Of a stretch of DNA of 64,000 bases, positions 7,589-57,496 are shown piece by piece. A model generated the notes under the pieces. It searched no databases and was not told where the DNA came from. It was given only the letters and a program-made list of their open reading frames with translations. Made by a program: the position numbers and the translations under genes. Numbering within the stretch: position 1 is the stretch's first letter; every line of letters begins with the position of its first letter. Where the stretch lies: the NCBI GenBank assembly GCA_037379345.1, contig CM074525.1, forward strand, positions 18,154,618-18,218,617, written 5' to 3'. Origin of the DNA: Perna viridis. Taxonomy: Eukaryota.

Positions 7589-9923
7589 GTATGTACCCTT
7601 TCTTCAGTAAAAAAAAACATTAAAACATTTTTTTCACACCTGAGCAGATGACATTTGTCAAACTGCACGTGACATTGTACAAGGATGCTGAGAAATTAGC
7701 TGATTGACACGCCCCCTTTTATACTCCTTAAAAAATTAACTAAGTTTATCGCCTTGAAAAGTGATCAGTGTTTAATACAGGAAAAACAAACATTGAGTCA
7801 TAAATTTAAATCAAATTATATGTTATAAGGTAAATTTTGTGGTTGAATACAATTTATAATTGTTAAGTTTTGGTGTATTAAAACCAGGAGTTGGTCGACC
7901 CTTACACCGTGCATTTCTTAACCTACATGTAGTCTCCTTCGGTTTCCACCTAAATTACGTCAATATTGTCTGCACCTAAATTTTCATTCATACAGAATTT
8001 TTTTTTACACATTCACATTTTATTGAACTAAGTCACAAAGAACCCACTATCTCCGATTTCAACAAGACTAGCTTGGCGTGATTTAAGACAGCTAAATTGT
8101 CCTCATTTTAACATGATGTATAGCGAGTTAGGCTGATCTCAGGGGGAAAACGACGATTTAATCTAATAGTGCTCGCAAGTATGAAAACAATTTGTGGGCC
8201 GAACTGGAAACTCCAGGGAGCTCGAACATCAATTCTCTTTGAGAAGTTTTCTTTCAACTGTAAATTATATGTAATTTCATAATTGTTAATCAATCGGTTG
8301 TGCGTCACAGTTTTCATTTAAACAACTATTTGCATTGTATAAGGAGAAAAGGTGATTAAATTATGAAAAATACATAGTGTATCACGCCTCTAGATAAATT
8401 ATATGCAAATGTTGTCTCACTTTATGAATTTCTGATTCATAAATTGTCTTACAAAAATCATATCGTATCTTGACCTTTTTATCTATGTTTTGAGGGCCTA
8501 TCGCCAGGGTGTCTTTAGTATCAAATCTTTTCTCTGGTAAAAAATTCAAGGCGTAACGACATGCACTGATCTTAAGCGTTTTTGCATTCTTTTGTAATAT
8601 TATAGAGTTTTATCGTTCTTACCACCTTCAATCAAGAAATTCACACTTCGTCGTCTTGTAGCAATTTTGATAATACCCCCTGAAAGAATAAAGACGCGAA
8701 GCTATCTTGTTCAAATTGAACAGTGCAACGAAGCTACTAGCATTTCTAAACTAACTTAACATATTTTCAAGCATGTGCTATTCTTTTAAATGTCAAATTC
8801 GTTCTTTTTGGGTGTTCTGAGGAGACACTTTCATACTGATGCACACATCTAGACTTTCGTGAAATTTGGAAGATATCTCTTTCTTTCGAGATCTGAGTGA
8901 AGACATTGCTATACCCATATATGTACGTCACTTCCATATATACTTTCATGCAGTAAAGTAGGAATAGATTTTATCCCTTAAACCGTTAGGATTATGCAGA
9001 GTTTAGTTATAATCTTGATAATCTCTCAATACACATATAACTGAAATTAAAACATGACCCAGAACCGAACCTTTTAAATACAGACGTTTAACAAAACTTC
9101 GTAATTAGTTCCCATTAATGACAAATTGCGTGTCTTTGAACTAGATTCCCTTTTAAACAGCTTGAAATTACCCTGTGAACAAGGTCGAAAATACTATCAT
9201 GACGTTCACATTAAACACAGATATGCGAGAAGCATAAATTATGCAGTGGTTGAGAAATTTCACCGAATTCGGCAGCTTTCCCTTGAAGTTTACGAGAAAT
9301 CAACAGTGTATACTGATCGCACAGATATTTATTGTTGTTTGTTTACTTGAAGCTACAATTGTACTCTGATTTGTGGGTAACAAGTTTCATGGTTCGTCAC
9401 AATTCATTATTTTCGTTTATTCTTGATTTTGAGGGTTTTTAAGTACATATATTTAACAGATTTTAAATTACATGCACTATATGTACCAACCATTTTAATA
9501 GCAGCTTTTTGTATTTAGCAGGGATATTTGCAAATTGGGTAGCTAGATGGGTTTTTTTTTTTGCTATACCTCTAAGGACTTTTCCACCGGTATCCCCAAA
9601 CTTCCAGTACTTTCATGTATCCTTTTGTTCCAATTAAAACCAACAGTGCAGGACCAGTTGATCCGGTAACTGCCGTATCTCATGTTACGCATTACAGTCT
9701 GGCATTATCTTTTACTGTAATTAATTTGAACCATAAAGCAGGTTTTTACTTGAGCCGTTATTAAAGTGAACAATGCATGGCAGAGATCGACCATGTGGAA
9801 TAAGTCAGCGTTCTCTTTTAAGAGCACGGGAGCGAATATGTTCTATAAGGCTACATGTACGAATGTAATTGTATCGTATATACATTGAACTATAACTGGG
9901 TCTCTTCATTCACTACAAAAACG

Positions 9924-10111
9924 CAGAAGTGTTTACTTATACGGATTTTCCGTATTTTCTACTGATTTAGACCGCAAATTATGAGCTACGGATTGTGAAT
10001 ATCTTCATAGTACCTTTGTTAAAATTTCAGAAAGTTCAGGATTTTACGAATTATTTCCATAGAATACTGTAAAAAAATAGGGATTGTCGTCAAGTAGTTT
10101 AAACAGATCTG
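9924..10111. mobile_element. MITE family G, copy 1
   Basis: Ends CAGAAGTGTTTACTT ... AAGTAGTTTAAACAGATCTG. Collinear with 28123-28306. Confidence 0.75.
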
Positions 10112-10592
10112 AAAACGTAGACACACTCAATGACACGATATGCATTTAATTATCCCTTTAAAGAAAAGAGAAGATTTTGTTAAAAAGTATGATCATTTAC
10201 AATATTTAAATATTTTGTTGTCATCGTAAGAGAGGGGGAACTTTTTTCTCAAAATGTTTTCAAAACGTACATTTTCTTCTTTTCCAGTAGTTACTTTATA
10301 GCTCTACATATGCAGGTACATGTATATACAGTATATTGATTCAGCGCTTGTTTTCTTACATGCATATGTTATTGAGAAATTTATTAATTAGAATTGGTAA
10401 TTCACAAGAAAACTTTTTAATGTTAAACTGAACCATTCCATTCATTGCATCAACATGTATTTCGTGTAGACAATTTAGCAAGGCCTTCCTTACAATATTT
10501 GCCGATATATTTTACATATGAAATGCTATTTTCCATTCTATCTGACTTAAAAAAAAAACAGTAAATTTTGTTGATATCAACACAATTTACTA

Positions 10593-10968
10593 TTAAGTAG
10601 CAGTCTGTGTAAAATGTGATACACCTAAAAAAAGGCTACATATTTTTATTTTTGTTATTATAGGTTTATATGATGAAATGTATAATAATTCCTTCCAATC
10701 TGCCTGCTCTTAGGAGATAACCCACATGGAAAATCCAATAGTTTCTATTGTACTTTAGTGTCATTCACAGAGTTATCTCCCTTATTTTTGAATTCTACAG
10801 TACATTCTATATAATTTTTATTTTTTTATGAATAAGGATTGTATGAACAGCCATATGTTAATTTCTGTTTACTATAAAATGTTTGAACAAAATATCAAAA
10901 ATAAAAACATTTAGGCTTTCCAACCATGAATCACATTTTGCATGATTCTTATCTGAAGTGCTACTTAA
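10593..10968. mobile_element. TTAA-flanked MITE family B, copy 1 (small internal deletion near the left end)
   Basis: TTAAGTAGCA ... TGCTACTTAA ends. Homologous to 30800-31204, 46304-46707 and 50077-50167. Confidence 0.85.
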
Positions 10969-13900
10969 TTTTTGTTCTATTTTAGATGGTGTAGTGTAAG
11001 TGTAAAAAAAATGTTAAAAAATCGTACTCATACTTTTCAGACTCCTTTAACCGATTTTTGCTTGTGCGAGTTTTGACAAATTGTACCCTTTTGTGTGATG
11101 CTTGTTTAAACCTTGTGGCTGTTACATCTACATGTATATTGTATGTATGGTATAGAAACTTATAAATGAATATGAAAAAAATGCCAACATCTAGACAGTC
11201 TTCATGTATATGTTTTAAGGTATGCAAAAAAAGGTATTTCAGATGGCCGAGAAACCCTGTATAATTCCAGCATGACTTTGCAAAAAAGATAATGTTCATA
11301 AAGTTAACCCAGATAAATGTAGGAGAAAATCTTCAACATCCAGAAAAAGTCCAGTAATTTTCGTATTTTCAACAGAGGATAAAATCTGTGAGTGGTTAAT
11401 GAAGACATAGTTGTATTGCTAATACAAACAAGTCTGATCTGATGAACGTTAAATTAAGTATAGAGATAGTGAGAGATACGAGCAAGGTCAGAGTCGCAGG
11501 GTGAAGTTTAATTTTCTGATCTTCCTACAAATAAACCAGGTGTATTCACTGTAGATTTATATATCATCCAAAGATCAACAGGGAGCCGACGTTTTCTACA
11601 TAACAAAGTGCATTAGAGAGATTATGGTGGTAGAATGTAGATTAAATATGATTTCTGGACTTTGAAATGAACACTTTACTGTAGATTAAATATATATTTG
11701 TATATACGATGTAATTGAGCTGTCCTCTAAATTTTTGACATGTATGGACAATGGATTCGGAGTGACTGTGATGTTATTTTTCATGACGCCATGATAATGG
11801 CCTGCAACACATTTAAGGGAAGGAAAAATCACGCTAATTCAGTTTCATGTAAATAATACATACATTGTATATACGCTTTTTGCACATTTCCATGTATAAT
11901 GAATAAAAGCGTGACAGTCAATAATTTCTAAATCTTTGATTGAGATATGTGCTTCAGTATATTGCGATCATGCACATGCACTGAAAAGTCAACCTCGGTT
12001 ACACAAACATAATCTTACTGATGAATCTAATCTTTAACGGACGGACGGATGTATAACAAATTCATAAACTCATTTGTGACGGCTGTTTTCTGTTGATTTC
12101 AGTACATGGACTTGCACAGAGTTAATACTGATTATAACGGATAGATGGGCGGTTTACAAAATGTGCATGTATAAAGCCCATGTATAATTTTTTCATTTTA
12201 AAGCTCATGACTTCCGAATTCTTTGTCTTGTGTCTCTGAATGAATGCTAGCTGGGCTTTATCAATTAGAATGATGTTGGAATTGAACCGAACCAGTCTCC
12301 AATTCCCCATGTTTAGCTTCTGACAGATAACCCCCATTGGGACGTTATTTGCAGGAGATCATTCTGGCATTGACCAAGAAATTGATACTTTCTCCCCAAA
12401 GTATGACTCTGGTCGTAATGAAATTCCTGGTATGCGTATCATTCTCTTCCAACTAAATAATTACGTTCTTCCATTATATCATTATAGAAAGAAAGGAAAA
12501 CACGCACGACCATCAAATATGTATTGTATAATTCATATAAACAGCCAGACAATATGTCTAGCCAGATCTACCCAGGACATTTTCAGGACAAAAAACATGT
12601 ACAGTACAGCTCATCCTGTTGTAGCACCTTCAACGCATCCATGGCGCGGACAGTTCTGTTAAACTTCAGTCCATATAGCATTTAAACTCTAAATTGTGTT
12701 ACCAGAACATCAAAATGTTTGCTCAGCATGTCCCATTTTTGGTGTTTGGCATTTTAGAGTTAACATGTTATTTTAAAAAAAATCAGAATCCTGTCGAGAT
12801 CACATTGCATTTAGAAATAACCACATGATTAGAGCATTGCGTCATTGCGACGAACTGAACAATATTATAAAAAGACAAGACAGAACAACAAAAGTCTGTC
12901 AGATTTCTCTATAAAGATACTAAATGCATCTGAAGTATTAGTAATCTATGGAAAAGCTATCTTTAAAATCAATTGACAGTTTTAGCTGTACGCCGCCTCA
13001 AAAGCAATCGAGTGAGCCTATTTTGTATGGAATCGAGTTGACCGCGGTTCACCAGTGACATGTTTTTGTAGGTTTAACTAGCAGTTTAGAGACAACCATA
13101 TAAAACTCGATTGATTTTGTTTCATCTGTAATTACACCTAAACTGACAGACCATATGTATTATAGATGTCTATTGCACGCTCTTTGGTAGTAATATTATA
13201 CATTATACTCGCTGTGGAGATGGTCAGAAATAGTTCTTCTGAGAGAGGAGCGATTCATCATACTGACTGCGGAAATATGCGATATGACTGTAAATAAGGA
13301 TATTACTATAATTTTTGTAGCATCTATGAAACGTCCATGCATTTACTTAGACATTCATCGGCTAAGAAGTCACACTTTCCTATAGATGATCAAATTATTG
13401 TAGGTAGCTGAAGAATAACCATGTAATGCAATAGCAAAGCAATGAAAATGGATATTGAAAACCAAGAATAACATATATATATATCACATTAATACGCCGT
13501 ACTTCTATATTTTGACTTGTCTTAATTGTTTTCCACAATTAATTCAGTTCTAATTTTTGATGAAACACCCCTTTCTCGTTTTCATTCAGATTCCTTATCA
13601 TTTGCTTATGTGTGCCTTTGCTAAAGGTACAGTCACCCACAGCGTGCGTTATTCGGCTTCTGAATCTATGTTTTGATCTTGAACTTTATAAGTTTTATGC
13701 TAAGAAGATTAATATGTGTTTTGCGAAGTTTCGTAAGTCTTCCAATTTACTGCCCGGGTCGTTGTTGGGTGATAACTTGAAATTCCCTTCACCACATCCT
13801 TGTGTTCCAATACAGACCAAGGGGGATGTATAAAAACGTTATATGTCAATTATGTAAGGCTCGGGTCTCTTGAATCCCCATGAACCCTCTTGGATACCAG

Positions 13901-15404
13901 AAATGTGCACCGTCATTAGCCCCGACAGAACAAAGAACAAAGAAATCTATAGACATTTGCATAACAATTTCTCAGGTGTATAGAATTTAATAATTCTGAT
14001 ATATTAATTTTAATAGCCTTACCGGCTTGTCTAGTTTGACGGAACTGGCGTGCATACCGAACAATCGATCATTTCTGTTTAATAAGCTATTTAATTTTTT
14101 ACTTTGTTCAACACATAACAATTGGGCTTTTAAACTTGAAAATAAGTATATAATTGTCCCGACCCACTCCACAACAGAAAGGACTTGTCTTGTTTCGGTT
14201 TTATCTACCTATAAAATTTTATTAAACCCTTATTTAAAGTTTCCACACAAATCCGATTTTGTTCTGTACAAGAAATAATATTGGCGTTGCTACAAGGCCG
14301 TACATTGTCCGTGACTAAAAAGCAGAAGATGTCGAAATCGGTCGAATCGTCACCCTATACCTTTCGGAAATTGCAAACTTCGCCATCATTCAGGTGTATC
14401 CATCGGTAACATTTTTTTAACCCAAACAATATGTATAGTATATGTTTGCATTCAATGAATCCAATATTTTCCCCAATGGAATAATTTACTTCGTTTTCAT
14501 AGACAACTCATAAAGCCTCGTATCGTACAAAAAAAAAGCAAACGAAAAAAATGAAAGGATGCCTTTCAAACATGATTCGATCCTTTGAAGGCTTATTCGA
14601 TTACGTTGAGGTCAATACACTTGGTAGTTATTATTTTAGGATAACCCTGCAACATCGACCATGTAGTGAAACAGACGCTTTGGACTCTTTAGAAGCAACC
14701 TATATTGTTTTTAAAAATTTGGTGTGACCATATGCTGTCGAACATTGGAATTATTTGGGACATATCTAGTATACATTTGGTCATGAGTGGAAGGGCTTCA
14801 TTAAATAAATCGTAAAATGTCAGAAAATGGCCATAACTTGACATACATTAGCACTGGAAAGGTGTGAAATTATCACCATAATCAACGCTCAGAACTGACG
14901 ACTAAAAGAGTGTAACAAATATTATTCTGCCTCTAGGCGTACATCTTAATTAAGTTAACACTTCACTGTGTAAAACATGCGATCTTTATGTCATAAGATA
15001 TATCAAATGAGACCTGATTGATTTACCGGTAATTTGTTGAATTAATTTGAGACATAATATACTTTTGCTGCCTTCAGGGGCTTATTGTTCGTCCATTTGA
15101 AAGGTATGCATTTTAAAATACCACATCTACTTGTCCTTTGAAGCGTAAAATCGTCACTTTACTCCAGTGTTAAGGCCAAGAACTAGCACGAACAACACGT
15201 GCATATCAAAACTATCATACCTCACAGTAACGTATATCTCTTTTTGGAAGAAGGAAACGAACTGCCTGATACCACAATATCTCATTGTTCCATTATGGTT
15301 TAACATGTTACAAGTGTGTTCTAAATGCATTAATTTGCATGATACTTAAAACCCATATGTACCGTAATCGTCCGTATTACGCGTTGTTTATAACTACATT
15401 AATA

Positions 15405-15580
15405 GCAGTGCTGGATGGGAGGGTTAGGCTACCTGGGGTCGAACAATTTTGTAAATTTATGCAAAGGCTTGGCAAATATTATGAGCAAATAGTACCAATA
15501 TTTTGGAACCCCCTTTTTTCTGAGACCCCCCCTCCCAGTATTGGGTGGAAGCCCCCTTATCAAAATATCTGGATCCGCCA
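15405..15580. mobile_element. Family E MITE-like remnant
   Basis: CAGTGCTGGATG ... CCCCCTTATCAAAATATCTGGATCCGCC, with internal C/G runs. Confidence 0.5.
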
Positions 15581-17157
15581 AAGCATATTTAGTCTACATT
15601 GACATAAAATTTCAAGCTCCTCTGTTTATTTTATGGATAGTTGTGGAATAAAATAACTATTCCATCCTTACAGTTTTTGTATTACACAATTTAACAACTA
15701 CAGATGTAAATATTTCCACTTAAGGTGTTCCTGTGGTTACAGTAAGTGCAATTTTAAATTCATTGTTTTTTTCTATAATTCATATCTGTTTGCATAAGTA
15801 ATCATTAAACATTTAGAATTGCTATGCTTTTACATAAACTCAACCAAAACAACTAGGATTGCATTTCTTCAGGCAAAGAAGCCTTTACTTACATAAAAAA
15901 GTAAATCATCACCAATTATGATGCCCAGAGAATAATATGACATTTAAGATGAAATGTTAATATTATGTTAGTATTTATATTAAATATGAAATTACATATA
16001 CCTGTAATTAAGTAGGAAAGAACTTCCTTATGTCACTTGACTGACAATGAACTTATTTTTCCGAGAAGGGAAGCACAATTTTATTTACATTTAGTTATAC
16101 AGAGTTCATTGACAGTGAAATAATAGGTTATCTAGTTTAGGCAATGTTCTAAAATTGAAAGGATAAATAATATTTCCATTCACTTCTCGACCCCCACTTT
16201 CAAATATAATGTTAGTATACAGGCCTGTTAATGTGTTGTTATAACCATAGCTTTTTTTGTGTGCTGATGTTTTTGGGACAAAATATTTTGACTGTCATAA
16301 TTCTTCAATTTTAACAGTTTTTAGTGTTTTTAGGTCCAGACTCCAGAGGGTAATTATTGCCCAAATTCCCCTGTCTATTGGCGTGGAGTACTAACTTACA
16401 TAAACTATTGGTTAAATTGTTACTGTTGAATTTTACCATCTCTTTGATTATGCACATCTTCATAACAGATTTTGTAGGTCATGCACCCATTTATTTATAT
16501 TCCAGATTTCTTGATTGCAAATTGAATTTTTTTCAAAAATATAGATAGATCAAAATTTTGATAGGTCAATAACTGTTAAGATATTCTGTATCTATTACTT
16601 GTTTCTGATTATAATGGCATATACCTTGTATTTTCGTGGTTTAAGTTGAAATGGTGCCATGTTTCTGATTTGGGAGCACCTGTCAGTGCATGCATATGTT
16701 GATCTGCTATTAGAAAATTATCTAAAAAAAAGGATATCTATGTAAAACCTACATCATCGTAACTTAAATTAGAAAACTTAAAATTGAAAAGAAAATATAG
16801 GATACATGCAGCAATATGTATACCAAGTTAAAACACTTGTAACATAAAGCTAAAAATTAAAGGTTTCTTTAGAAAAATGCAGTTTTTAATGGTAAAAAGA
16901 GTTAAGTTGTTTGGAGGGACTTCCAGTTGTTGTTTCTAACACAAGACTCCAGGTATCAAAGCCAGGCATCCCTTTAATAGTCCCAGCATTAAAAGACTAT
17001 TATTTTGTTGTTATCAATGTATTAATATCTTGACAGCCAGGGATAACTATATTGGGATAAAAACCTTAATGTGTCAACAATGATTTCCTTTATTTAGGAA
17101 GAAAGGGCATACTCATTTGTTATAATGGGTTACTCAATCACTTGTTGTTGTAAATAT

Positions 17158-17511
17158 TGTGCTGAATATTGTACAGATACACATTTTGAAGTATTAGACC
17201 CATTTGGGACTCTTGAAAACATTCTTCTGATAAATGTTTGCTCATTTCTCTAAGATGTTGAAGTTGAATTTCGTGTAGCTTTCTATCTATGGAATTGATT
17301 TTTTTAGTATTTCAATTATTTAAAACCGATTTCTATGTGCTGAATATTGTACAGATACACATTTTGAAGTTATAGACCCATTTGGGACTTTTGCAAATAT
17401 TCTGCTGATAAATGTTTGCTCATTTCTCTAGGCTGTTCAAGCTGAATTTTTTTGTAGCTCTATTTATGGAGTTGATTTTTTAGTATTTCAATTATTCAAA
17501 ACTGATTTCTA
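17158..17511 (+). repeat. Tandem duplication, about 178-bp unit x2
   Basis: TGTGCTGAATATTGTACAGATACACATTTTGAAG... starts at 17158 and again at 17336. The copies are diverged but collinear. Confidence 0.93.
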
Positions 17512-17849
17512 ATGTACATGTATTATTTTCTATGACATTGTCATAAGTAGATTCTGTTTTTTTTTTTTTTTTTTACAGATGTGGGAGTGGGTGTGGGGAT
17601 GAATGCTTTGATCAGAATTAGAGGGGTCTTGTACCAATTGGCACATTTCCCATTAAACTCAGGAAATGTTTATGATTGAACTGAAATACACCCTCAAAAA
17701 TTTTAATCCCATTTACAAGGATTTTGTGTGATGGTGTGTAGTAACTGTTGTTGAGTGAAGGTTGGGCTGCTATGTCCAATTCATCAGTGAAAATTTTAGT
17801 CACTTAAGCATGGAATGTTTCTATCATAAACATGTTGTAAGTGTCCGTT

Positions 17850-18194
17850 ATAGGGTATGTAAGTCTTGTTCTAGTTCCATTTTCTTTACCAGAATTTCTG
17901 ATGTAGAACATATTGAAAGCCATAGACCGATCTGTATTTTATTGTTTGCTTCCAGGTACTCCAAAGGCTGTATAACAATGCAAAATCTTCTAGTTTATGT
18001 TTTTTCTTACTACATTTATCATGTAGAAATAGTTATTTGTCATTTTTATCGTGATTTTTTTACACAGAAAGATTTTTGCACTTAACACTGAACTCAACAC
18101 TCGCTAAATGACAAATCTCCATACTTTTGAATAGTAGACTAGGACCCATTCTCGTGAAATTACGGGGTCACATGATGAGACTTACATACCCTAT
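17850..18194. mobile_element. MITE family C, copy 1 (17-bp TIRs)
   Basis: Perfect TIR ATAGGGTATGTAAGTCT ... AGACTTACATACCCTAT. An inverted homologue lies at 55583-55920. Confidence 0.88.
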
Positions 18195-20407: not shown

Positions 20408-20587
20408 TCCATGCTCCCAGTTTTTAGTGGAGTCCGAGTTGCTCATTTACTTTTGTTACTTTGTATGTATGATTTTAGTTACTTTATTTTCTTTGTTGTG
20501 CATGTCTGTTTTCCATGTCTGGTCTTTGTCCCTGGAATATATTCTTTTGATTACCGCTATAACCTTGGTTCCCTTGATTACTCTTTA
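20408..20587. mobile_element. Interspersed repeat family A, copy 2 (truncated, inverted relative to copies 1 and 3)
   Basis: Reverse complement of about 3395-3572. Confidence 0.85.
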
Positions 20588-26635: not shown

Positions 26636-28122
26636 GTGCAGGAGTGAAGCCCATAATTTACTCAAAGTTTATGTTCTGCTCTTAAAAAAGACTAAAGTAA
26701 TCTATGCTGGGTTGATTAAGATTATGATCAGAGTCTGTCTACTGGAAAATTAATCAACTCCATGTAAATACAGTTGTAGGTACAAGTTCATTGAGGTTTA
26801 TATTTAAGCCTTGGGATCTGTTATTTTCCGATAATACAGCTTTCCAAGGAAGGAATCATTATGTCTAAATATACATAACGGTTCCTAACTCTATAAGTAG
26901 ACTCAATTCTCCCTTTAATTGGTGTTCGACCATTACCCATAAAACTGTATTGATGATTAATGCTAAATGAAAGCATAATTGTTTCAGTGTACTGTCCCTA
27001 CAAAAACCACATTGCTTATTATGGGTCCTAATTGATTTTTAAAATCAATAGCTTTGCAAAATCTTGAGTGGTTTAGTTTTGTTCTGATCTAGTTGTCTAA
27101 GTAATTTTGAGTGTTTGACGAACAGCCGATAGACTCAGGGGTATTGTCTGTAAGTGGTGTAGTTAATATTGTCCTTCAATGGCATGATGATTTCTTTTTA
27201 GTTTACTGACTCGTGTCTTCAAAGTTTTACGGGGATTTCATGGGAAAATTTGTCTCTATATTGTTTTAGGAGTACTATTGTTAGGTGTTGTTTTAAGTTC
27301 GGTACATTTTATGCCTTTTTTTAAGTTAATAAAGTATTAAAACATAAAGTAGGATGTGAGTTAAGAAAACTGTAGTCAATATTCTTGAAATTGGTTGTGC
27401 CATAGTAAATGTACATGTATATTTTGAATTATTTATACTTTCAATGTCTTGGAAAGATAAACAGTAAAAATCGTTAACATCAAGAAAACTTTAAATATTG
27501 ATAGGAAATTTCTAGTCTGTTGAAACACACTACAGATTTTTTTTCCCATGAATAAAGTTCGCTTTTTTTTATATAAAAAGTGCATTGTTAAGATAGTAAT
27601 CAATTTTTGACACTTTTTCAAGACCAAAACCCCTTGTCCTGTTTACCTTTCTTTCTAAAGTTTCAGGTTGGTAAATAATCGTTTTTTTTTTACAATGCTA
27701 AATCTGATATGCCGAGCATGAACAATGAGTAGCCTATTGTAGTTTAGATCTATGGTTTCCCCTATTGATATGTGCCCATTGTATGAGAAAGTTTGAATTA
27801 AATATGGGTCCATTCATAACAAATCGGCCTTTATACAAATTTTGTAGATAATATTTGTTTGATATTATAGCAGTTTATAGATTTTTATACAAAGACGGCT
27901 CATAAGCTTGTCATAACCTAAACTTAATGTGTGCATACAAGTTCTTAAATACTGGCCTTTATAACAAATTGGCAGATTTAGTAAGAAAGATATCAAATTC
28001 TTGCATAGACTAATACTACGTGAAGTAACTGTTTTTGGTTCTTAGGTGCTCAGTAATCTCTTAAGAGCATTTTTATTTCCATATTAATGAAAAAAACACT
28101 CTATATAATTATTTGGGGCTAT

Positions 28123-28306: not shown

Positions 28307-28957
28307 GGCTATGTGTAATGGGGCTATATGCAATGAACACACCTTCATTACTTTTAATTGGGCAAATGAAAAACAACCCTTACACTTTCTCATTGGGTTA
28401 AAAAAAAGTAGGTGGGGATGAGAGTATGGTGATCTTGGCATGAACTATGATGTCTCATGAATGAACCCAACTTTCCAACTTTTTCAGTGTAGTCTTGCCT
28501 AACCATTACAAATTGCTGTAGAGCACAATCAACTGTCCCTCATAAATTTAATGAAATGTCACTTTTAAGTACCAGTTTATAGTGTGATCAACCACCAACA
28601 GATTCCTATCAATGGCTCTCTTGGAATAGAGGAATAGATATACTGTTCAATAATTGCTGCTAGATCTTAGGACTTGAATACCGTTTAAATTCATGCATTG
28701 AATTTTAATAATTAACACCATCGATTTGAATAGGAAAGTGAGAATAACTCTCCATTGTTTGCTAAAATGTCTGGCTTGGGTTTAAATATAGGTGATTATG
28801 ACGATTATTCAAATATTGTATTGAAGTTCCTGGCAGACTGTCGAAACAGGACTCTGCATGTACAAGTACCTTTGTTGTATAGATATGTTGCATTTGACTG
28901 TCAAACCTTCATTTACTTTAACTATGTAGTAAAGGTTTTTTGTATCTGTTGTGAACC

Positions 28958-31478: not shown

Positions 31479-31722
31479 AACCCCTGCTTGGATACTAGTA
31501 CCAATGATTAGGCATCACTCACTCGGAGTAGGCCAGAGCGTCAACACAGCAGCCCAGTCGCTAGTAGGACATGCCCTGACTGAGTTCTTTGGTCAGCTAT
31601 CCCGAAGCCTGGGCTTCACGATCTTCTACTACTAACTGGCATTATCAACAGAATCCCCATAAGGGGTGGTCATGCAAGATCCGTAAGGATAGTCAAGACC
31701 GTAAAAACCCCCAATCATCATC
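31479..31722 (+). mobile_element. GC-rich retroposon-like fragment ending in an (ATC)n tail
   Basis: Abrupt GC/CpG-rich patch in CpG-poor surroundings, ending ...CCGTAAAAACCCCCAATCATCATC, like a SINE/LINE 3' end. Confidence 0.45.
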
Positions 31723-34554
31723 TTCAGGGATCAACATATTTTTCTGTTGTTGTTAGTTTTCAATGACACTGTGAAGCTCATTGTGGTTGTCAAAAAAGAT
31801 TTGCATGCCACTTTTCATTGTTAAAATCTGAAAGAAAAAAATTACATCTTTCCAATACATTTTATCTTGATAGTTTTGCACTATCAGTGTGATACAAGAA
31901 ATATCTGCATGTACATATGTATTCTGGAGGATAAATTCCATGAGATCTTTTCTTCCAATATTAGCAAGTGAGAAGACTACATGTGTTCATTTCTTTACCT
32001 AGGTAAAGAAAAACAAACTAAGGATGTAAGATTTCTTTTCACTCTGTGTTTTTTTTGTATTGTATGTACTTGCATGTGCTGAAATATTGAGCAGCTCTGC
32101 TGTGATCATATGTCTGTGGTTTTTTTAGATGTCTTTAGACCAAAGATTGGTATTCATATTTTTATTAACAAACTTCATTACTCACTGGTGTAATATAAAT
32201 GTAAAATTACAAATAATTCAAACAAAACTGACAAACAATTAAAGTCTCTCAACCGATTCATCAAAGTTTTGGAAATAAAAAAATTTTATTGATTATTTCG
32301 TATGTATAATGACTGTAACACATATTATTTATTGCACGTATGTATAATTATTAGTTATGAATACTTCCCCACCACAATTGGTCATATTGTGACACATTAA
32401 TTGAGTTTATTTGACGTGTTACGTAAAAGGGAATGAATGCAAAATGTTCTGACGGAGATGTAGACAATTATGTGTTTCTTATTCAGGCCATGTTTGATGC
32501 ATATTGTTCAGGGGATCAAATTCTATTTTTGCTTAAGGAGATAGACCTAGAGTAAGGGACATAACTCTTACAAATCATTGGATGTTTATCTAAAGTATTT
32601 AATGTCAATCTCATGAAAGCATCAAAGTAACTTAGATTGATTTCATTCCATATCAAATAAACACTTGATTGGCTATGATGAAATTGAATATGATACAAAC
32701 ATATCACTGATTTCAAGAGTTAAGGTCTACCTCCCTAAAGGGTCCAATTAAAGGAAACCAAAACCATAAAAATTGTATTCACCATATGGGAATATTCTGT
32801 ATGAAATGTAGGCCTTGACAAATTTTTCAGTAGTTTTTGCTACTTGGTCTATGATATGCTATGATTTAGATTTAGCTTGAGTACAAACCATTTTTGGTGC
32901 TAAATGCTCCCTTGGTATAATGTAAGTTTAAAGTATTCCTTTCTAAACCCAGTTAAGTTTTTTTCACTTGTTTGATAGTGAAGACCAATTGATTATCCAA
33001 TATTGAAACTAAATAGTTTTCTTGAAAATTAAAAAAAACCTTTGACAGTGAGGTTCCCTGTTTAGATGATACCGTTAACAGTTTAAAGATCTAAAAGCTA
33101 CTGGATATTAAAATTTAAGAGCCTTCCAGAAAATAAAGATGTCTTAAGCTGTAAAGCTCGATCCTATTTAAAAACCTTCAACAGTTCAGGAATCAAAAGT
33201 ATTAACTTGCATGGCCTGAGTACATTTATTCACTGTACCTATAGGTAATGCCTGATAATGAAATGTGTTACTGGTACCTGAGTTAAATTAAATACTGTTA
33301 CAAAATGAACTAATTATAAAGAGGATAATTAAAATCTATAAGAATTGATCGGTATATAGGTGAGAATGATGTGACATATGTACTTGATAACCCTGTCTGT
33401 GGGGGCCTAATGATTCTAATTTAGGTTTTAGACACTAAATGGCAAGGTTTTATGTGATACCCTCTGAAAAGTCTGTCTGTCTGTTTCCCAAAAAGTTTCC
33501 AGATGATATTTTGAGAATTGATCAATCCAATTTTTTTAACTTTGCACAGTTGTTAAATCCGTAACATGGTGAATATCACTTAATGTTACATTAATGGTCT
33601 ATTTTATTGATAGGGCATCAGAACCCAAAGGGGAATCAAAATCCAAATGGGGGTGAGGGGGTTTAGATCATCAGGGCTTTGTAACATTGTACCTTAAGTA
33701 AAGTATGTTAATTTTTTCTGCATTTATTATTCTGAAGTAGACAATCCTTTTATCACAACTGAAGAACACATTTAAATAATTTTCTAAGTTAATTAAGCCT
33801 TACAATAATGATTTCCACAATTGCAATCATTGGATATTCAGTGAAACTTGTGTAGATCAGAATCTGAATAAAACTATCTACATAAGAATCCTCATACATA
33901 TTGGCAAAAAACAGACTGAAGTGTCAAAAATAGAATAATTCAGAGATATCAATAATTCAGAGATATCAGAATCCAACTACATGACCTAAACATGAAAACA
34001 GGAAAACAAAGATGATCTACACATTGCAATTTTGTGAACAGAATAAATCATCACTTTAATCATATCAGTTTCAATACTTTTTTTACCTGTATAAATAGCA
34101 CACCTGCCGAAACAGAACAAATTCTTCAGATTAGACAGGTTTATCCATGATTTCTAAAAGAACAGATTTAGTTTGTACTCACTCTGTTTAAAAGTTCCAA
34201 TAATATGTCACCCTCATCCAATCATCTTTGTTAAAAAATTGAAGAATGTATACTGAAGCCCTTGGTCACATTTAGGGTTTCCCTTAGACCATTATAGAAG
34301 GATTGGCCGTTCTGATGTCTTTCCCTTCCACCCTTCTGTCTGTTATATAGACATTACAACACATGCAATGACTTATATAGGAATATAAATTCACATATAA
34401 AATGTTCCCACCAGCCATATGCTTTAGGAAAACTTTCCACTGCTCCTTTGGAGCTGTTGTGGGAAACACCAACATTAGTTCATTATTTGTTTTATATATG
34501 AGTTAATATATTAATTTATGTTATAGGTCAAATGTTTTAACAATGTTTCATCTA

Positions 34555-34620
34555 TGTGCTAATTTATGTTAAAATCTTTCTTTTATTACATGTATTTTAT
34601 CTTTCTATTTGTAGGTAAGT
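34555..34620 (+). promoter_or_regulatory. Candidate recursive splice site (ratchet point) 1, junction 34614|34615
   Basis: GCTAAT branch-like motif (34558-34563), pyrimidine tract ...TTTTATCTTTCTATTTGTAG immediately followed by GTAAGT, and no AG from 34527 to 34612. Confidence 0.65.
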
Positions 34621-37600
34621 CAATATTTATTAGCAAGAAACATTGTCTTAAGAAAATCTTAGTAGATCAGGAAGCATGAAAATGTAATTTATGGCTTTCC
34701 TCATTACTGGATAAAAATAGAGAAAGATGGGGTTGAGGTATGTTATTGTTAAATAATCTGTAGTGGACCCAACTTTTTAGAAGTTAGGCCTCTTGTTGAC
34801 AACTGCACTTTTCTACAACTGGAACACTCCGATATTTTATTAAGTTCTCCCCAGTACAATATAGTTCTTCACTTTACATCGTGATGTATGAAATGTTTTT
34901 CTATTGGCACTGTGCAAATTTTTGCAGAAGCCAATGAACAGTAAATACTGTTCTTTCTCAAATTTATGAGACAAACTGCAAAGTTTAGATCTTTTTTATA
35001 GCAACAGTAACACAAATTTCACCAAAGTTCATTGACATTGATTGCAGTAAGGGTTTTTGAGTTCTTGTCAAAATTTAGAAAATCATCCCGTTAATGTACA
35101 TTTTAAATGAAAACAAATTAGAAATTTATGAAAATTGAATATGAGCTCAAATCAATAGAAAGAAGCAAATGACCGAAGTTTCACAAATATTGTTTGCAGA
35201 ATTTTTTAGTTTTTGTGCAAAGTGAAAATTACAGACAGGTACATATATACAGACAGACAAACACCAGTGTACAGTATACAACTTGCCTTGAAAGGTGGGC
35301 AAATAAAAATGGAGTAAAGGTTTCAATCAAGATGACTGATGGTTTATGATCAAGCTCTGTTTACAGAGCAATGTCATAGATAGTGGAATTTGACTGATTT
35401 TATTTTGCTTGCAATTAAAGTACAGCTAGCGGTGACTGCTAGAAATATTTATAGAAGTGACAGACAGAATGGATATTATTTGTATTATGTTCGTTTTCAA
35501 TCCATCACACAATTTCTAAACAATTAGTTGGTACTTGATTTGTAAAATAACAAGTAGTTGACTTATGGTTCACCGTGATGGCAGCGATAAGAATTGGACA
35601 AAAAATCTGATTTGATATTCGAAAACGTTGTGGTTTGTCATTTCCAAAATACATGTCAATTTCATTTCTACTAACTGACATTCAAATGTCAATATGATTG
35701 AAGGTAACACTCAGTTTCTAAAGATTTTTTTTAAACCAGGCACTGACCAATTTTACTAGTAATAGTTTAGTTCTTATGAAAGAATAATTAAGGGAACCAA
35801 GATTCTAGCAGAAGGTACCTGATATGATGCAATTTTCTTTATCTAATAATGAAATGTCATCTTCTACTAACTTTTCATTCACTGTTGTAAAGCCCTTGTC
35901 AAGAGATTCATCATTATCTTTTCAAAATGATGTCAGGGAAAAAAATGATCCCAAAAAAGCACAATTCTAGGAATAATATCTTCAGTTTATTAAAGAAGTC
36001 AACACTACAAGTGATATTTCTTTCTCTGAAAACATTTTTAACAGGGTTACCAATATTAAGAGCCTCTTCAATGGCCATGAAATATTTTGTCAGCAGGTTC
36101 ATCATCATATATTTTCATTATCTTTGCTGATTGCAGTAATGAGGCCAATATTTTTAAATTATGGGCATAAGTTGGATTGATCTTTGGGAAAGTCAGTTGA
36201 GATAATGATATCATCTAAGATTGTGCACCTGAGCTAAGGAGATTTGATGTATTGATAGACTTTTGTACTTTCTCAGTCAGACTCTGTACTAATACTGATT
36301 TCGTTTTCTCAGTTTTTTTTAAGTTGTGGAGGAAAACAGTGGGAGATTACATACACCTGAGCTTCCAACTTTCAAAATCTTTTAGAAGTCAACTTTAGAA
36401 GTTTCTACCACTACTTACATATTTTCCTTCTGTATTGTTAGACTGTGGAAAAAAGAGGGAATATTTAAGATTTGATGTTACATATATGTGCTATATCTTG
36501 TTTCTTGAAGGTTTTTCAGATTCTTGACTGGCTCCTCAAAGGTTACTTGTTCAGAAGCAGTGGGTGATCTTATTTGTCAGCTTATTTTTGTTTCTGATTA
36601 GTCCTTTTTTTTCTCAAACTACCTGTCTACATAAAATTCAGACACTGCCAGTGGTAAAGTGATTTATGGTGTAGAAAAACCCACCAAACAAACCATGCTT
36701 TTTCAGTCTACATATTCTATACCTTCACATAACAATCTTTTCTGCATTCAGATCTGCACTTTTAAGAAAAAAAATATATGCAGCTCCCACTGATATTAAC
36801 CAAGTGAAGCCAAATCAAGAATGATAACTCTTCCAAAGTGCAAATTTTGTGTACAATCTATATGATTTTTTCGTCAAAAGTGCAACAACCAAATGAAAAA
36901 AATAAGACTGGTCTTGTGATCAGTAACTGTTTCTGAACAAGAAGTAAAGCTGAATTCGTTGGGCTTTTAACATACATGAATCACCCTCTGTCTGATCGTT
37001 AGAAAGACTACCACATGATAAGGCAATAGAAATCTTCACATTCAAGAATTTTGACGTTAAATTATCTTTGTTTTTTAAGATTTTGTGTAGTAGATGTTTT
37101 TTTATTCTGTATTATTTCTTTTGTTTTTACCTTACTGGAGTTATATTCAAGAAAGCTTGAAAAAGTTCTCTGATTTCTTCACTGTAAGTTTTAATTTCAT
37201 GCCTTTGAGTTTTATCAAGTCTACTTCAATTCAGATTTGAAAAAAAATAATTGACGATTCTCTTTTCAGTATAATCTCTCCATTTCCTGCATAAAGAATG
37301 CTATGACATTGAAATGAAATGTATATTTTTTCTATTATTGTTAGAAGTGCTTACGTAATTCATTGACAGAGCGTCTATGTACCGTTAACCTTCGTTTTAA
37401 CATGCTAGTGAAATTAATTACAAAAGATAATTATAAAATTCCATCATGTTCCTTGCTTAGCATTAAAGTTCGTAACTCAAAGACAAAAAAAACAGCATTA
37501 AAATCGTGTAATGATGTTAAGGTTATCATAATCTCTGACTTGTAATCAGTTTTCAAGATTTTTCTTTCATAGAGGGTTGTACATTCAAGCAAAAAAACTT

Positions 37601-40107
37601 TGTTTGATTGTGTAATAATGATACATGTGATAAAGACAGTTGGGTTGTAAGAATTTCAAAAGAGGAACTCAGGGGGTATCCTGTGGTTTACAGCACCTTT
37701 GTGACTTGACTCCGCTTTGAACTAAGTTTTAATCAAGGTAATTATCCAGAAATTGGCAAAATTAAAGTTTATTTTATTCACAGTTTCTCCCAGTTCAGGC
37801 TCGTTCATACTTATCACAAGCCAACAATTTTATCTAATGTAGTTTTGTTTCTATTTTTGTTATGTATACATGTACATGAAAGGTTCTCCATAACATTGCT
37901 TAATAAAGTAAAACATTCAACTGACCCTACCCTGCAACAAAAACAAAATTTGGTGATAGGTAGAAGATAACCGAATATACATGTTAAAACAGCGTGAATA
38001 TTTATTGTATAATCAGTAACCTGAGAAACCACTTGTTTGTTGGTTTTTAAATTGAGAATTGCCACTATGAAAAGAAACCTGAACAATTCATGTGGTCATT
38101 CTTTCATTAAGTATTTACTGTAAGTCCGAGATCCCCAGCTAGCTTTAGCCTCATTTTCTGCTTGCGTGGTTAACTAATTGGTACCTTTTGAGAGGTTGTA
38201 GAATCATTGTTGTATAAGAAACTGTCAGTGGTATTTAGGGAGATTTTTTTATCTCTGAAGGAGCAAATAATTGGTGATTAAGGCTACTATGATAAAAGAT
38301 GTTTTGCTGCCCTACTTAATCCCAAGACCTAAACTTTGTGAGAGAAAATCTTCTAAAACTTTTAAGTAGATTACGAAAAAATTTGAAGAAGAAAAATGAT
38401 ATAATTTTAGAATTCATTTGTTGCTATCTGTTTTACTTCAGACTCTTTTATGATAAGGTATTTTGAGTTATATTTCAAAATAGGTTACATGCATTGTAAA
38501 GAACATCCATTAGAATTTTGATAATGGAAGGGAAATTAAAGTACACAGTATTAAGAACACAGTGAGTTGAGTTAGAAACTAGGACATGGTTAAGTTTTGT
38601 GTTCGAATAATGATTAAATAGACAGATCAGAAAAGTTCAAGAAGTCTCAAGTTATACTAAACAATACAGAGCTATTGTCAATACAAGTATGTTCATTTAA
38701 ATTTCATGCAGTGTATAAAATGTCAAGTTTCCCTTCTTACAGAGACCTTATTTTGTCTGTCTATGCCATGTAGGTGTTGGTACAAATGGCTTTTTAAATG
38801 GGAATAATATTGCAGTTAAAGATGTCTTTCCACTGGAGGTTATTTAATCGTGCACATTGTCAACTACAAGCCTACTCCTCCCACTAATGTTTGATGTCTT
38901 GGCTCATATCTTATTAAGTGCTAACGGCCAGATTACAAGGGTGACAGGTAAAAAAACTAAGTTACCTGTAACTTACATAAGACGTCATGATGAAAAATAG
39001 CTAATGAGCGACCATTGTCATTTTTTATGTTGAAAAATGTTTTGTTTTTATGGGAGAAGTGTCGTAATTAATGCATTGTGTTACCTTGGGTTGTGTGGTT
39101 TTTGCGGTATTTCATGTTTATATATTGGTAAGAAGAGTATATAATATGTTTAAACTATTTTTAATACATCTATCATACAAAATTACAAACAATTTTGCAT
39201 ATTTTTGAAATGTTGGTGGGCTGGGGATTGAGAATATGGTAAATTTCATTGAATTTGCATCAAATCCTGAAAATCATAGATATTTATTAACTTACTCATA
39301 TTAGTCCTAATGGTTATGAGAGCAAGTTTTTTTCTAGTTCTGGACCTTTAAACTCTTCAATTATTTTAGACTAAATTCACTGTTATTACAAACAGTGATT
39401 ACAAAATACCTGTGAACTACTCCTACGCTTAAGTAAGGATTATAGATATTAAAAAAATTGTCAATCATGTCAGAACTAAATATTAAATGTCCCATGGATA
39501 CTCGTGTAATCATATGAGGACTTTGGATATTTAAAAAAAATGAAGAAGAAAAAATTATAGGCACTTGCTCCCACCATCAAATATGCCCAACTATTAGAAA
39601 CACTAGTACATGTCTGTATATATATTTGTCAGACAGAGCAAGCCTCTGTGGCTGAAACATGTACACAATATGTTGAGGACTGTGAGAATATAAAAATTAA
39701 AAATTGTGGTCAGTTCTTTAATCATTGGGTTAAGTTATTGGCTGGTTTATCATTACTCAACATACACCTGAGATGTCCCAAACAAAAATGGTGTTTTGTT
39801 AAAGTCTGAGTGACTCATATTAAACACCCATATTTAGTAATAACTAGCCTAATTTTATAGAGCTGTACAAACATTTTATTAAGGTTCTACATTATTGTGT
39901 TGATTTTAATGATTTTGGGGGGATTAGTGTTGAAAATGATCATATGAAATATTTAGATGGGTTGTAATATAGGTAATTAATTCAGGATGTTTTTGTAGCT
40001 GGGAATAGAATGGACTTGAAAAAGATGGTTTATGACCCATGATTCATCATGGTATTCCTTAAAAAATGGGGAAAATGGAAACAAAAATGACATAAATTTC
40101 TGTGATT

Positions 40108-53986: not shown

Positions 53987-55582
53987 ATTTGTTTACAGGT
54001 TTTATTTTATTTTTGTTATTAATTTATATCATACATGATAATCAATAAGTGATTTATGCATATGGCTTTTCACAAAAAAATATTTCTACTGAAAACACTT
54101 TAGAATGCCTATGAGACAATATTTTCATAAATGGCTGAGCATTGTCTTTTCCCATGATTTGACAGCTCGTCCTTTATAGGTATGCAGGTATAGTTGCACC
54201 TAAAACGAGCCAAAGAAAAAAAGAGATTCATGCACAACCACTTTGTCTGTCTATTTTTCTGTCTGTCCTGATTTTTTTCAATTATCTAGGCTCCGAAATG
54301 ATGGATTGGTTTCAATTTAAAATTGGTTGTGTGGCTTTATATAAATGAGGCATTTTTGGTGCTGTCCGATATCAAACTCTGGTGAATAAGTGGTGGTAAA
54401 CATCGCATGACATGTACAACTTCATGTTTTTCACATAAGGAAACCCATCTGTATGTCTAGTAGAAAAAAAATATGAAAACTTTTTGAGCCTTGCTTTTTC
54501 CCCAATGGTTTTAAGCCCCCTTGTATTCAAATCAACTTGTTATTGTGGATATTACTCATAGAAAACTTTAATTTGAGACGTTTCTTCAAATCTTCACTTT
54601 ACAGTAATTATAAGATTGTGTGTGCTTCACTTTTAAAACTTGAATTTTGGAATGCTATTTGACACCCCCACCAGATCCTTTATAGATGATAAAACTTTGT
54701 GAGGTCGGGAAGGATCACTTAGAAGAACAAGGAAACGGCTGTAATTGTATTATTTCACTGATAGCAATTGTATTTCTGCGGAACTGATATTGGGAAAATT
54801 CTTACAATTTATTGGTTCATGGCTGTCTGTTTTGGATGTATTGTTTTTAACGACCACTCCTTGTGTTCTAGATAGGCTCGTTACCATGAAGATACATTTA
54901 TATAGGGGAATCTGTTATTGTAATTTGTCCAAGATTTTCTATTTTAGTGGAAATTTGAATTCATGGATTTGAAAGGAAATTCTACATTTCTACATTTGAT
55001 CCAAGTATAAAACCTCTGAAAGTTTTTGGCTAACTCTCCAGATTTTAAATTTTCCTGTTCACAGACAATTTTTTGTACTCGCTTTTCTACACAAGGAATG
55101 GTTGATATTGGTGTCAAGGATACAACTTTTAGGCTACCTCATTTGCTATTGTTAAAGGAAAGCTCAAACTGAAATAAAAAATAAATTAAAAATCCTTTGT
55201 CAGAAAAAAAAAAACTTTCTTTGTTGCCTTGTAGCTGTATATTTGGTTCTGACATGAAAGCTAACCTGACAGGTTCTTGCTCAAAGTAGAATCTCTCTCA
55301 GATCTCTCTTGCTTTGCCAATTGTTTGATTAAAATAAAAGAGGCGAGATTTGATTGAATTAGTTATCAGAAGCATAGGCTAAAAATGCATTTCTGGTTTT
55401 GTCATTAAAAGATTGTGTATTTAAGAGTACATGCAGTTCTACCTTGTGCAAAATATAATGAGAAAAACACGTTTGAAATTAATTGTAAAAACATGGAAGT
55501 ATAAAATATGGTGACAATGATTACAATGTGTAAGATGACAGTATTCGGCCTTATGAAAAAAGGTCAAGAGGGGAATTCGCGA

Positions 55583-55920
55583 ATAGGGTTTGTAAGTCTC
55601 GTCATGTGACTCCGTGGTTTCATGAGAATGGGTCCTAGTCTATCATTCAAATGCATAGAGATTTGTCAATTTCAGAACGTTGGATTCAGTAAATAAAAGC
55701 CAATTTTCGTGTAAAATACCAATAAAAATGACAAATATCTATTTCCACATGATAATAGTATTAAGAAAAGTGTAAAATAGAAGATTTTGCAATGTAATAC
55801 AGTGTTTCGAGATCCCGGAAGTTAACAATAAAATGCAGACCGGTCTTTGGATTTCAATACGTTTTCCATCAGAAATTCTGGTAAAGAAAATGAAACTAGA
55901 ACAAGACTTACATACCCTAT
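55583..55920. mobile_element. MITE family C, copy 2 (inverted relative to copy 1)
   Basis: ATAGGGTTTGTAAGTCT ... AGACTTACATACCCTAT. Reverse complement of 17850-18194. Confidence 0.88.
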
Positions 55921-56396
55921 TGGAAAGTAATAGATGATGAGACAGATCAATGCAATACCTTTGAGGGAAATGCAGCATTTAGCAATGAACCGATTGGATA
56001 CTATTTTGTTCTGTGCTTGAAGTTGTTTTTTCCAAAGAAATATAAAAAAAATAAAGGGAAAGAACTCTTGAATGGGAAATTTTTAGTTTTTCCACAAACA
56101 CTTTAAATGTCAAAGGGACTTCCTAAAGAAAAACAATAATTATTAGGCATTCAAAGACTTAGTAATTTGGATTAGTGAAGAGATTTTCATTTTAAGTGTT
56201 AATCTGTATGGACTGAAGGTTCAGCTTGGATTACCAGATGAACCTAAAGTTTGGACTCCAAATAATGTTTAGTATCTCTAATGGAAGCCACTTCAGACCT
56301 AGAAAAGCAATAGGGTAGAAATTCAATGGGTTGAATCTGTGTCAGAATCCTTTTAAAAGTGAAACAGTTTTTTGCAGTGTGTCATCTTCAATCATA

Positions 56397-56571
56397 TACA
56401 GTGAAACTTGGTGCAACAGAACTCATTTTGGACTTTAAAACAAGTTTGGTGTTCTGTTTATCAAGGTTTAAAATACATTTTTTAAAATTGGTAAAGAGAC
56501 TTTAAAAAAGTGTCTGGTTTGGGCAGGTTTTACAGATTATTAAGGGTTCAGTTTAGACAGACTTTACTGTA
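56397..56571. mobile_element. TA-flanked Tc1/mariner-type MITE (family F)
   Basis: TACAGTGAAACTTG ... CAGACTTTACTGTA ends. Related fragments at about 41575-41700 and 49500-49595. Confidence 0.65.
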
Positions 56572-56599
56572 TTACATGTATACAGGTAATAACTCTGAA

Positions 56600-56664
56600 T
56601 ATTAATGTTGATTTTATTCTTTTATTTGTACTAAATCAAACCTTTTCTCTCTTTTCAGGTAAGA
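56600..56664 (+). promoter_or_regulatory. Candidate recursive splice site (ratchet point) 2, junction 56658|56659
   Basis: TACTAAA branch-like motif (56629-56635), CCTTTTCTCTCTTTTCAG immediately followed by GTAAGA, and no AG from 56586 to 56656. Confidence 0.68.
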
Positions 56665-57496
56665 ATTATGTAGATATGAAGCATGAGTTGGTGTAATGTC
56701 ACAGTTGACTGGTAATGTAGATATTTGTGGGAAATACCATGGGATGAGATTATATGTTTGTTTTTCTGGCCATGAGCTGCCATCAGAGGATTAGGCCAAA
56801 ACAAATAAATGTGTGTTTTATTGATGGGTCTAATATTAGATAAGGAAGATGTGGCAAAATGTGTTCATCCATTTTGTCCAATATACATTTTAATAATTGT
56901 TAATTGTGAACTTTAAAATTTCCAACCAGGGGCCTTGTCTTTAAAGAAGTAAAATTTTGCAGTGATGAAATAGGATTTCTTTGTTTTATGATTTTCAGAT
57001 CTTACTAAAATTTTACTAGTATTAACTATTGAGTCCTGGCAAAGCCTTTTCCCTGTCATGTAAAACATTCTAGTTTTACTATTTACAATTTTTTCTGAGT
57101 CATTGTAAGCATTGGTGGCCAAAACATAGATTGGGTAGGAAAAATGAAACACAATTGTATTTTCTCTTGGCCTAATAAGGTAAAACACATTGGTTTTATT
57201 AATCTGTATAGTGAACTGTCTGCTATTGACTACTTCCAGCTTACTCAGTGATGTATTCTCAATAGAAAAGCTTCCAGAAATTGTAAAATATTTTGACATT
57301 TCAAATTAAAGCTTTAGGTTTTCAGGATAAGTAGAATTATATTGAAAGGTATAGAATGTTAGAGGATATGCTGATTTATAATTTCGACAGGCCCTGTAAC
57401 ATATCAGTTGTCCATGGCTCAAATATGGCCTTGTTTTAGTATCATTCTCTGTTTTCGACTGTTCTTCTTTGCTGTGTTGTATCAGGAGTATTTCAG

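Follow-up and report, generated by a model that had tools for sequence, protein, structure and literature searches.

The 64,000-nucleotide stretch of DNA analysed here (contig CM074525.1, positions 18,154,618 to 18,218,617; henceforth the window, with positions counted from its first letter) carries on its + strand the beginning of a couch potato/RBPMS (cpo/RBPMS) gene of a mussel, and it is the giant intron of this gene that is of concern. The intron is 68.4 kb long and lies between the first coding exon and the first exon of the RRM. As judged from the analysis as a whole, it is probably removed stepwise, by recursive splicing. It contains two points, 34614/34615 (site 1) and 56658/56659 (site 2), at which a splice acceptor directly abuts a GTAAG donor; this had been claimed in an initial annotation of the stretch, and the sequence does read so at both. 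Site 1 is, by its sequence, a conserved ratchet-point-like element with the full anatomy of a recursive-splicing exon (RS-exon), and it would, with fair probability, be used for recursive splicing.

Site 1 reads ...tctttctatttgtag/GTAAGTCAAT and site 2 reads ...ttttctctcttttcag/GTAAGAATTA, the slash marking the splice junction here and below. The features that make up the two sites are the following, the donor scores being taken from a generic matrix.

34528-34614, + strand: acceptor of site 1, with an 86-nt AG-free zone, branch candidates of the TTTAT type, a pyrimidine tract, TT at -5/-6 and TAG.
34615-34620, + strand: regenerated donor of site 1, GTAAGT, scoring 7.9 when joined to the exon end GAG.
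34615-34737, + strand: candidate cryptic RS-exon of 123 nt with two in-frame stops; its end donor, GAG/GTATGT at 34738-34743, scores 5.2.
56587-56658, + strand: acceptor of site 2, with a 71-nt AG-free zone, the pyrimidine tract ccttttctctcttttCAG and TT at -5/-6; the top acceptor score of the intron.
56659-56711, + strand: regenerated donor of site 2, GTAAGA, and a candidate RS-exon of 53 nt; the donor scores 6.4 after GAG, as against 1.9 for the RS-exon end at +53, CTG/GTAATG.

Both sites are fusions of an acceptor (pyrimidine tract plus YAG) with a GTRAGN donor, on the sense strand of a long intron. The TT at -5/-6 is seen as ..atTTgtag at site 1 and as ..ctTTtcag at site 2, and it is likewise present in three counterparts from the genus Mytilus.

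It is proposed that the donor of exon 1 would first be joined to the acceptor at 34614, which would be recognised jointly with the short cryptic RS-exon at 34615-34737. Such a join would restore the consensus donor GAG/GTAAGT. As this regenerated donor is stronger than the RS-exon's own, the RS-exon would be skipped in the following step, in which the exon would be joined either to the lineage-specific acceptor at 56658, regenerating GAG/GTAAGA, or straight to exon 2. The regenerated donor of site 1 (7.9; 6.3 in M. californianus) scores above the RS-exon donor in every species, and in our mussel it also exceeds the native donor of exon 1 (5.2). The Mytilus counterparts of the RS-exon are 76-79 nt long and end in AAA/GTAAGT or CAA/GTAAGT, with scores of 3.5-4.7. 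The bodies of the RS-exons are poorly conserved, and they contain stops or have a length that shifts the frame.

The AGGTAAG motif by itself carries little weight. It occurs four times on the + strand and five times on both strands of the window, compared with 6.8 ± 2.5 in shuffled sequences, which is the chance level; the initial annotation had given the same count for the + strand and had cautioned in the same sense. The signal was said to lie in the strong acceptor context of two of these sites, and this context is indeed well beyond chance by score, by AG-free zone and by rank. Of the intronic AGs, 0.9% have an AG-free zone as long as that of site 1 (86 nt), and 1.9% have one as long as that of site 2 (71 nt). 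Ranked by a generic pyrimidine-tract/YAG score, no more than 0.50% of the 3,624 intronic AGs of the sense strand do as well as site 1, and no more than 0.19% as well as site 2. The intron has three AGGTAAG sites on its sense strand, and that two of them should have such acceptors corresponds to a loose p of ~7.5e-5, if the features are independent. When acceptor and donor matrices were combined, the two sites took ranks 1 and 2 among the 1,471 AG/GT sites on both strands of 264 kb (11.5 and 10.9), and the third-ranked site scored 8.6. Across all the loci read, which amount to ~1.65 Mb of strand space, a single unrelated site reached 10 or more; it is antisense and not conserved. Some look-alikes on the + strand, at 172, 185 and 202 kb of the extended region, were dropped, as the strand skew there does not indicate + transcription. 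A search of Rfam gave no match at site 1.

Further support for site 1, independent of its score, is its conservation at a collinear position in three Mytilus species. The orthologous genes of M. galloprovincialis (L023), M. californianus (L024) and M. edulis (L025) were retrieved via the longest RefSeq isoforms, and the orthologous introns measure 69.3, 68.5 and 65.5 kb, respectively. In all three, the top sense-strand AG/GT site of the intron is one and the same element. It reads ...tttttctttttag/GTAAGTCAAAAG in M. galloprovincialis and M. edulis (ctttttag before the junction) and ...ttatcttttcag/GTAGGTCAAAGT in M. californianus (cttttcag before the junction), and it lies 31.2 kb (M. galloprovincialis), 27.2 kb (M. 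californianus) and 26.1 kb (M. edulis) into the intron. Site 1 and the Mytilus element are flanked by the same two collinear BLAST anchors, which in our mussel are at 28693-28774 and 41026-41092. The stretch around site 1 is itself alignable:

34485-34628, + strand: conserved island at site 1, found by interval-restricted BLAST to Mytilus (E 2.5e-6 and 7e-6).

Only about 7-8% of the intron can be aligned in all between our mussel and Mytilus, and this island is one of just two or three alignable stretches within 12 kb between the mussel genera. The identity of site 1 to Mytilus is 80% at -20 to -1 and 83% at +1 to +12, compared with 55-60% in the flanks, so that conservation is sharpest at the junction AG/GTARGTCAA. 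The substitutions preserve YAG (TAG or CAG), GTRNGT (GTAAGT or GTAGGT) and the TT at -5/-6, and the AG-free zone upstream of the junction extends over 59-109 nt in the four species. As a control, the 464 intronic AG/GT sites of both strands were compared with the collinear Mytilus intervals; nine of them share an exact 11-mer (the AG plus nine bases), and several of these nine lie within true conserved islands.

The claim that recursive splicing operates here, made in the initial annotation, is thus borne out as far as anatomy, rarity and the conservation of site 1 are concerned; actual use on RNA is argued by analogy with known systems.

The intron has further non-coding islands that are collinear with the three Mytilus species, at window positions 8356-8563, 11440-11700, 14049-14285, 14922-15040, 27779-27942, 28693-28799, 38800-39000, 41026-41092, 47121-47614, 48673-48751 and 60197-60410. 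The intronic islands are 63-84% identical to Mytilus, and those that are non-coding may be enhancers. Conserved AG/GT sites devoid of a pyrimidine tract were noted at 14861, 38947 and 47268.

The host gene was identified from translations of its exons, which also set the strand. Two of its parts lie in the window.

6683-7588, + strand: first coding exon, its left limit putative, with a conserved 5' untranslated region; ATG at 7487, 34 codons (MRQTPETS...TPEEE), phase 0.
7589-64000, + strand: portion of the intron inside the window, delimited by the exon reading of the downstream sequence and by the EEE/VRTLF junction of annotated orthologues.

Exon 1 ends in ...GAAGAAGAG at 7588, followed by GTATGT, and positions 6683-7590 are 84% identical to Mytilus at the nucleotide level. 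In the 200 kb read downstream, the first letter of exon 2 is exactly 12,000 nt beyond the end of the window (L003 position 2000), and the other RRM exons, including PVGFVTFSS..., follow within 5 kb of it. The single N-terminal RRM with its PVGFV motif is that of the RBPMS/couch potato family. The exons were translated and searched singly, no spliced model being built; the 46 residues of exon 5 alone matched 441 proteins, among them named couch potato/RBPMS proteins, and the EEE/VRTLF exon junction was found in annotated orthologues. In the N-terminus encoded by exon 1 and in the product of exon 5, the Mytilus RefSeq proteins show almost no difference from ours, sharing, for example, ...QLSQSMDSVNTTPEEE and ...AATLPTFIHPLTG. 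The nucleotide identity of the exons to Mytilus is merely 83-87%; this, together with the small alignable part of the intron, points to a mytilid mussel outside the genus Mytilus as the source. The initial annotation had spoken of a molluscan couch potato/RBPMS gene in a probable bivalve, and exon translations and protein matches agree with it.

The intron runs from 7589 to 11,999 nt past the window end, which corrects its length from the >56 kb estimated earlier to 68,411 nt; that it is a giant intron with both sites on its sense strand held good. Its sense strand shows an excess of G over C and of T over A along its length. Sites 1 and 2 divide it into steps of 27,026, 22,044 and 19,341 nt, of which the first two had been given as about 27 and 22 kb, the third having come to light with the full length. 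Both sites precede the RRM exons, whose presence upstream of them had been named in the initial annotation as evidence to the contrary.

Beyond exon 2, exon 3 is present in two tandem 54-nt versions, GYENALLKVMGKPGKNNS and GYEGSLLKVTNKNGKNTS, at L003:3642-3695 and L003:4681-4734 (13.6 and 14.7 kb past the window end). Both versions are kept in Mytilus, the oysters and Patella, and RefSeq isoforms have one or both of them; they thus form an old duplicated pair of alternative exons in the cpo/RBPMS gene of molluscs. Ahead of the gene, a run of 135 Ns at 1352-1486 is due to masking or to a gap.

Several observations weigh against stepwise removal of the intron, or at least against so strong a reading of the figures. 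The scoring matrices are generic approximations and were made after the sites had been seen. With an AT skew of -0.04 to -0.08, the sense strand is rich in T, and about twice as many pyrimidine tracts are to be expected on it by chance. Further, the fused motif is not in bulk excess genome-wide when compared with a reversed-pattern control, a control that is itself uneven between the CAG and TAG forms (90 and 262). The counts were as follows.

Y10NYAGGTAAGT: 26 matches, reversed control 36.
Y8NYAGGTAAG: 182 matches, reversed control 352.
Y8NYAGGTAAG, CAG form: 94 matches, reversed control 90.
Y8NYAGGTAAG, TAG form: 88 matches, reversed control 262.
YAGGTAAG: 34,475 matches, reversed control 43,967.

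Site 2 has no counterpart that could be found in Mytilus, where the best AG/GT site of the syntenic interval scores at most 1.1 and local similarity is absent. In M. californianus its place can be confined by weak anchors to ~1 kb, in which nothing similar occurs. Two short word matches to site 2 in Mytilus were dismissed as chance. Outside this genus, the comparison covered the oysters Ostrea edulis and Crassostrea virginica and the limpet Patella vulgata; a Tegillarca gene model lacks exons 1-2. A long intron is found at the same position in all three (52.2, 47.3 and 49.6 kb, respectively), and these introns of 47-52 kb show no conserved strong fused site on the sense strand. A strong look-alike in C. 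virginica (L027:38499) was rejected, as it is not AG/GT in O. edulis even though the flanks align, and the AG/GT sites common to both oysters are without pyrimidine tracts. A CAG/GTAAGT donor devoid of a pyrimidine tract is kept in C. virginica (L027:35456) and O. edulis (L026:35504), and probably marks where an unannotated alternative exon ends, rather than a ratchet point.

The RNA reads, finally, speak neither for nor against the use of site 1. Two raw runs from 2026 (~3.5 Gb read) and two contig sets were mapped on 31615-37614; the depth is zero at 34415-35014, and since fewer than one intermediate read would be expected at such coverage, the reads have no power here. No loose end was reported at 34615. 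The unique sequence of 31615-37614 has scattered contigs of one to three reads only. Just upstream of site 1, at 34077-34497, there are a few exact-match contigs of depth 2-3.6 from two studies, with one or two raw reads, and the 400 nt downstream of it have neither contigs nor reads; the upstream contigs are too few to interpret. Very high depth at the repeats 32415-32814, 35615-35814 and 36615-37014 comes from other copies, with reads 90-95% alike, and the first of these repeats shows opposite-strand joints (32561 to 32722), like a hairpin-forming, MITE-like element.

The two sites thus differ in standing. As site 2 is without a Mytilus counterpart, its support consists of the strength of its motif and of its sharing an intron with site 1. 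It is one of the 182 genome-wide Y8NYAG/GTAAG matches (C15:18211264), which occur about once per 7.9 Mb of strand, and the chance of such a match on the sense strand of this intron is ~1-2%. Its core is single-copy, although a repeat lies close by:

56382-56582, unstranded: high-copy repeat whose end lies ~75 nt upstream of site 2; its candidate copies number at least 956.

Site 2 is plausibly a lineage-specific second ratchet point; provided that site 1 is real, this is judged to be only slightly more probable than the opposite. The alignment of the intron across species, which had been recommended in the initial annotation, therefore turned out well for site 1 in the three Mytilus species, failed for site 2 in Mytilus, and recovered neither site in the oysters and the limpet.

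The absence of a conserved site from the oysters and the limpet indicates that the element is not old, and by its sequence, site 1 appears to be mytilid-specific. Such specificity argues for an independent origin and against inheritance from the common ancestor of flies and mussels. A bolder proposal would be that stepwise removal of a giant intron upstream of the RRM exons is an ancestral feature of protostome cpo/RBPMS genes, seen in flies and mussels, in which ratchet points turn over while the mechanism persists; this we consider highly unlikely. It is also hinted that mussels may have a genome-wide set of multi-ratchet introns. When tandem and repeat copies were removed from the 182 sites, six same-strand pairs and no opposite-strand pair remained within 70 kb, where ~1.4 of each would be expected if the sites were uniformly distributed. 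The six pairs, spaced 10-50 kb, are:

C11:19506247/19532567, both on the + strand; matches the strictest pattern too.
C5:28099624/28149836, both on the + strand; a third motif at 28409981.
C5:46313159/46353523, both on the - strand.
C7:26997254/27030301, both on the + strand.
C9:18180919/18190647, both on the - strand.
C12:12868515/12888858, both on the - strand.

These pairs are suggestive candidates for other multi-ratchet introns, a suggestion that is weakened by the strand-biased composition within genes.

The motifs can also be explained in other ways. Poison exons are common among the genes of RNA-binding proteins, and site 1 could simply be the acceptor of an ordinary cassette or poison exon (34615-34737) that is expressed and at times included, by which the gene would be down-regulated through nonsense-mediated decay (NMD), with GTAAGT never used as a donor. 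The acceptor, a downstream donor and in-frame stops are present in four species, and vertebrate RS-exons are often expressed. However, the peak of conservation falls on the first nine bases of the exon, GTARGTCAA, and not on its body, where conservation is poor and the length varies (123 nt vs 76-79 nt). A consensus donor at the very start of the exon, conserved across genera, is moreover what defines an RS-exon. The annotated mytilid isoforms have no insert between EEE and VRTLF, and the RNA-seq depth at 34615-34814 is zero, though with low power. A poison exon at site 1 is, on this evidence, unlikely. Another candidate is an unannotated alternative first or 5'-UTR exon, transcribed from an intronic promoter and ending ...TTTGTAG, of which 34614/34615 would be the donor. 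Fly cpo genes use several promoters, a conserved donor-only CAG/GTAAGT without a pyrimidine tract exists in the oyster intron, and the few exact-match contigs at 34077-34497 lie just upstream of site 1. These contigs have a depth of 2-3.6 only, however, and similar ones are scattered elsewhere in the stretch. In four species, the supposed exon would end in a pyrimidine tract of 20 nt that follows an AG-free zone of 59-109 nt; acceptors have this signature, exon bodies do not, and the explanation is judged extremely unlikely.

It could be argued, too, that neither motif functions in splicing, site 2 being a chance occurrence in a T-rich strand and site 1 lying within a conserved non-coding element, such as an enhancer, that happens to resemble fused splice sites. 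The chance-level frequency of AGGTAAG and the missing genome-wide excess fit in with this, as do about a dozen other conserved islands of the intron that are not splice-like. Look-alikes do arise, for example an antisense site of M. galloprovincialis that scores 10.3 and is not conserved, and the strong C. virginica site, which sits in a conserved island and is not AG/GT in O. edulis. Against mere resemblance stands the placing of two of the three intronic AGGTAAG sites among the top 0.5% of acceptors, with the p given above. The top sense-strand site of each Mytilus intron, moreover, falls in the same collinear interval of 9-10 kb and shares GTAAGTCAA, a coincidence estimated at <1e-3. The AG-free zone, pyrimidine tract, YAG, GTRNGT and downstream donor have all been kept despite base changes. 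We therefore regard two non-functional look-alikes as quite improbable, and recursive splicing through site 1 is retained as the preferred reading.

Proof of recursive splicing comes from Drosophila and vertebrates; for other insects and for sea urchin, it has been deduced from sequence. In Drosophila, ratchet points with zero-nucleotide exons are known from Ubx, kuz, Bx and cpo, the last of which has two proven ones. Of the fly ratchet points, 99.5% have TT at -5/-6; a cryptic RS-exon is required, the junction is ultraconserved, and the donor is usually the stronger one. The mussel sites resemble them in the pyrimidine tract, in the TT at -5/-6 and in a YAG fused to GTAAGT or GTAAGA on the sense strand of an intron >50 kb. 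Several sites occur in one intron, 20-30 kb apart, and at site 1 conservation is sharpest at the junction, followed by a short, stop-containing and poorly conserved RS-exon with a weaker donor, as the donor-competition model has it. The host gene is itself the orthologue of a proven fly case, a likeness that holds at the level of the gene.

There are differences as well. Proof by junctions, lariats and saw-tooth coverage belongs to the fly, whereas the mussel sites are known from sequence. One of the two mussel sites is conserved, and the bulk excess of the motif is lacking, in contrast to an enrichment of ~20-fold for sense over antisense in the large introns of flies. The candidate RS-exons of mussels, at 76-123 nt, are also longer than the ~50 nt typical of flies. 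Shepard et al. 2009 (PMC2773006) computed the enrichment of ratchet-point sites in large introns for insects and sea urchin (8.2-fold), with no mollusc among the species; theirs is an enrichment without per-site conservation, whereas the mussel offers one site conserved across genera and a weak genome-wide signal. The RS-exons in long neuronal genes of vertebrates (Sibley et al. 2015, as cited in the work on fly ratchet points) share with the mussel an acceptor defined together with the RS-exon, a regenerated donor that competes with the RS-exon donor, and a premature stop that inclusion would bring. They are mostly expressed, only a handful being fully suppressed; the RS-exons of the mussel are sequence candidates.

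Among the papers open to search, none linked recursive splicing to molluscs or bivalves, two hits for oyster being unrelated. On the evidence of sequence, the present reading would add a phylum to those in which the mechanism is known. The occurrence of one conserved and one lineage-specific site, with neither in oysters or limpet at a comparable intron, is informative on the gain and loss of ratchet points. The long introns of the oysters and the limpet, which do without such sites, bear on whether long introns need ratchet points at all. Above all, the conserved element of mussels provides a concrete target for asking whether recursive splicing operates in Lophotrochozoa.

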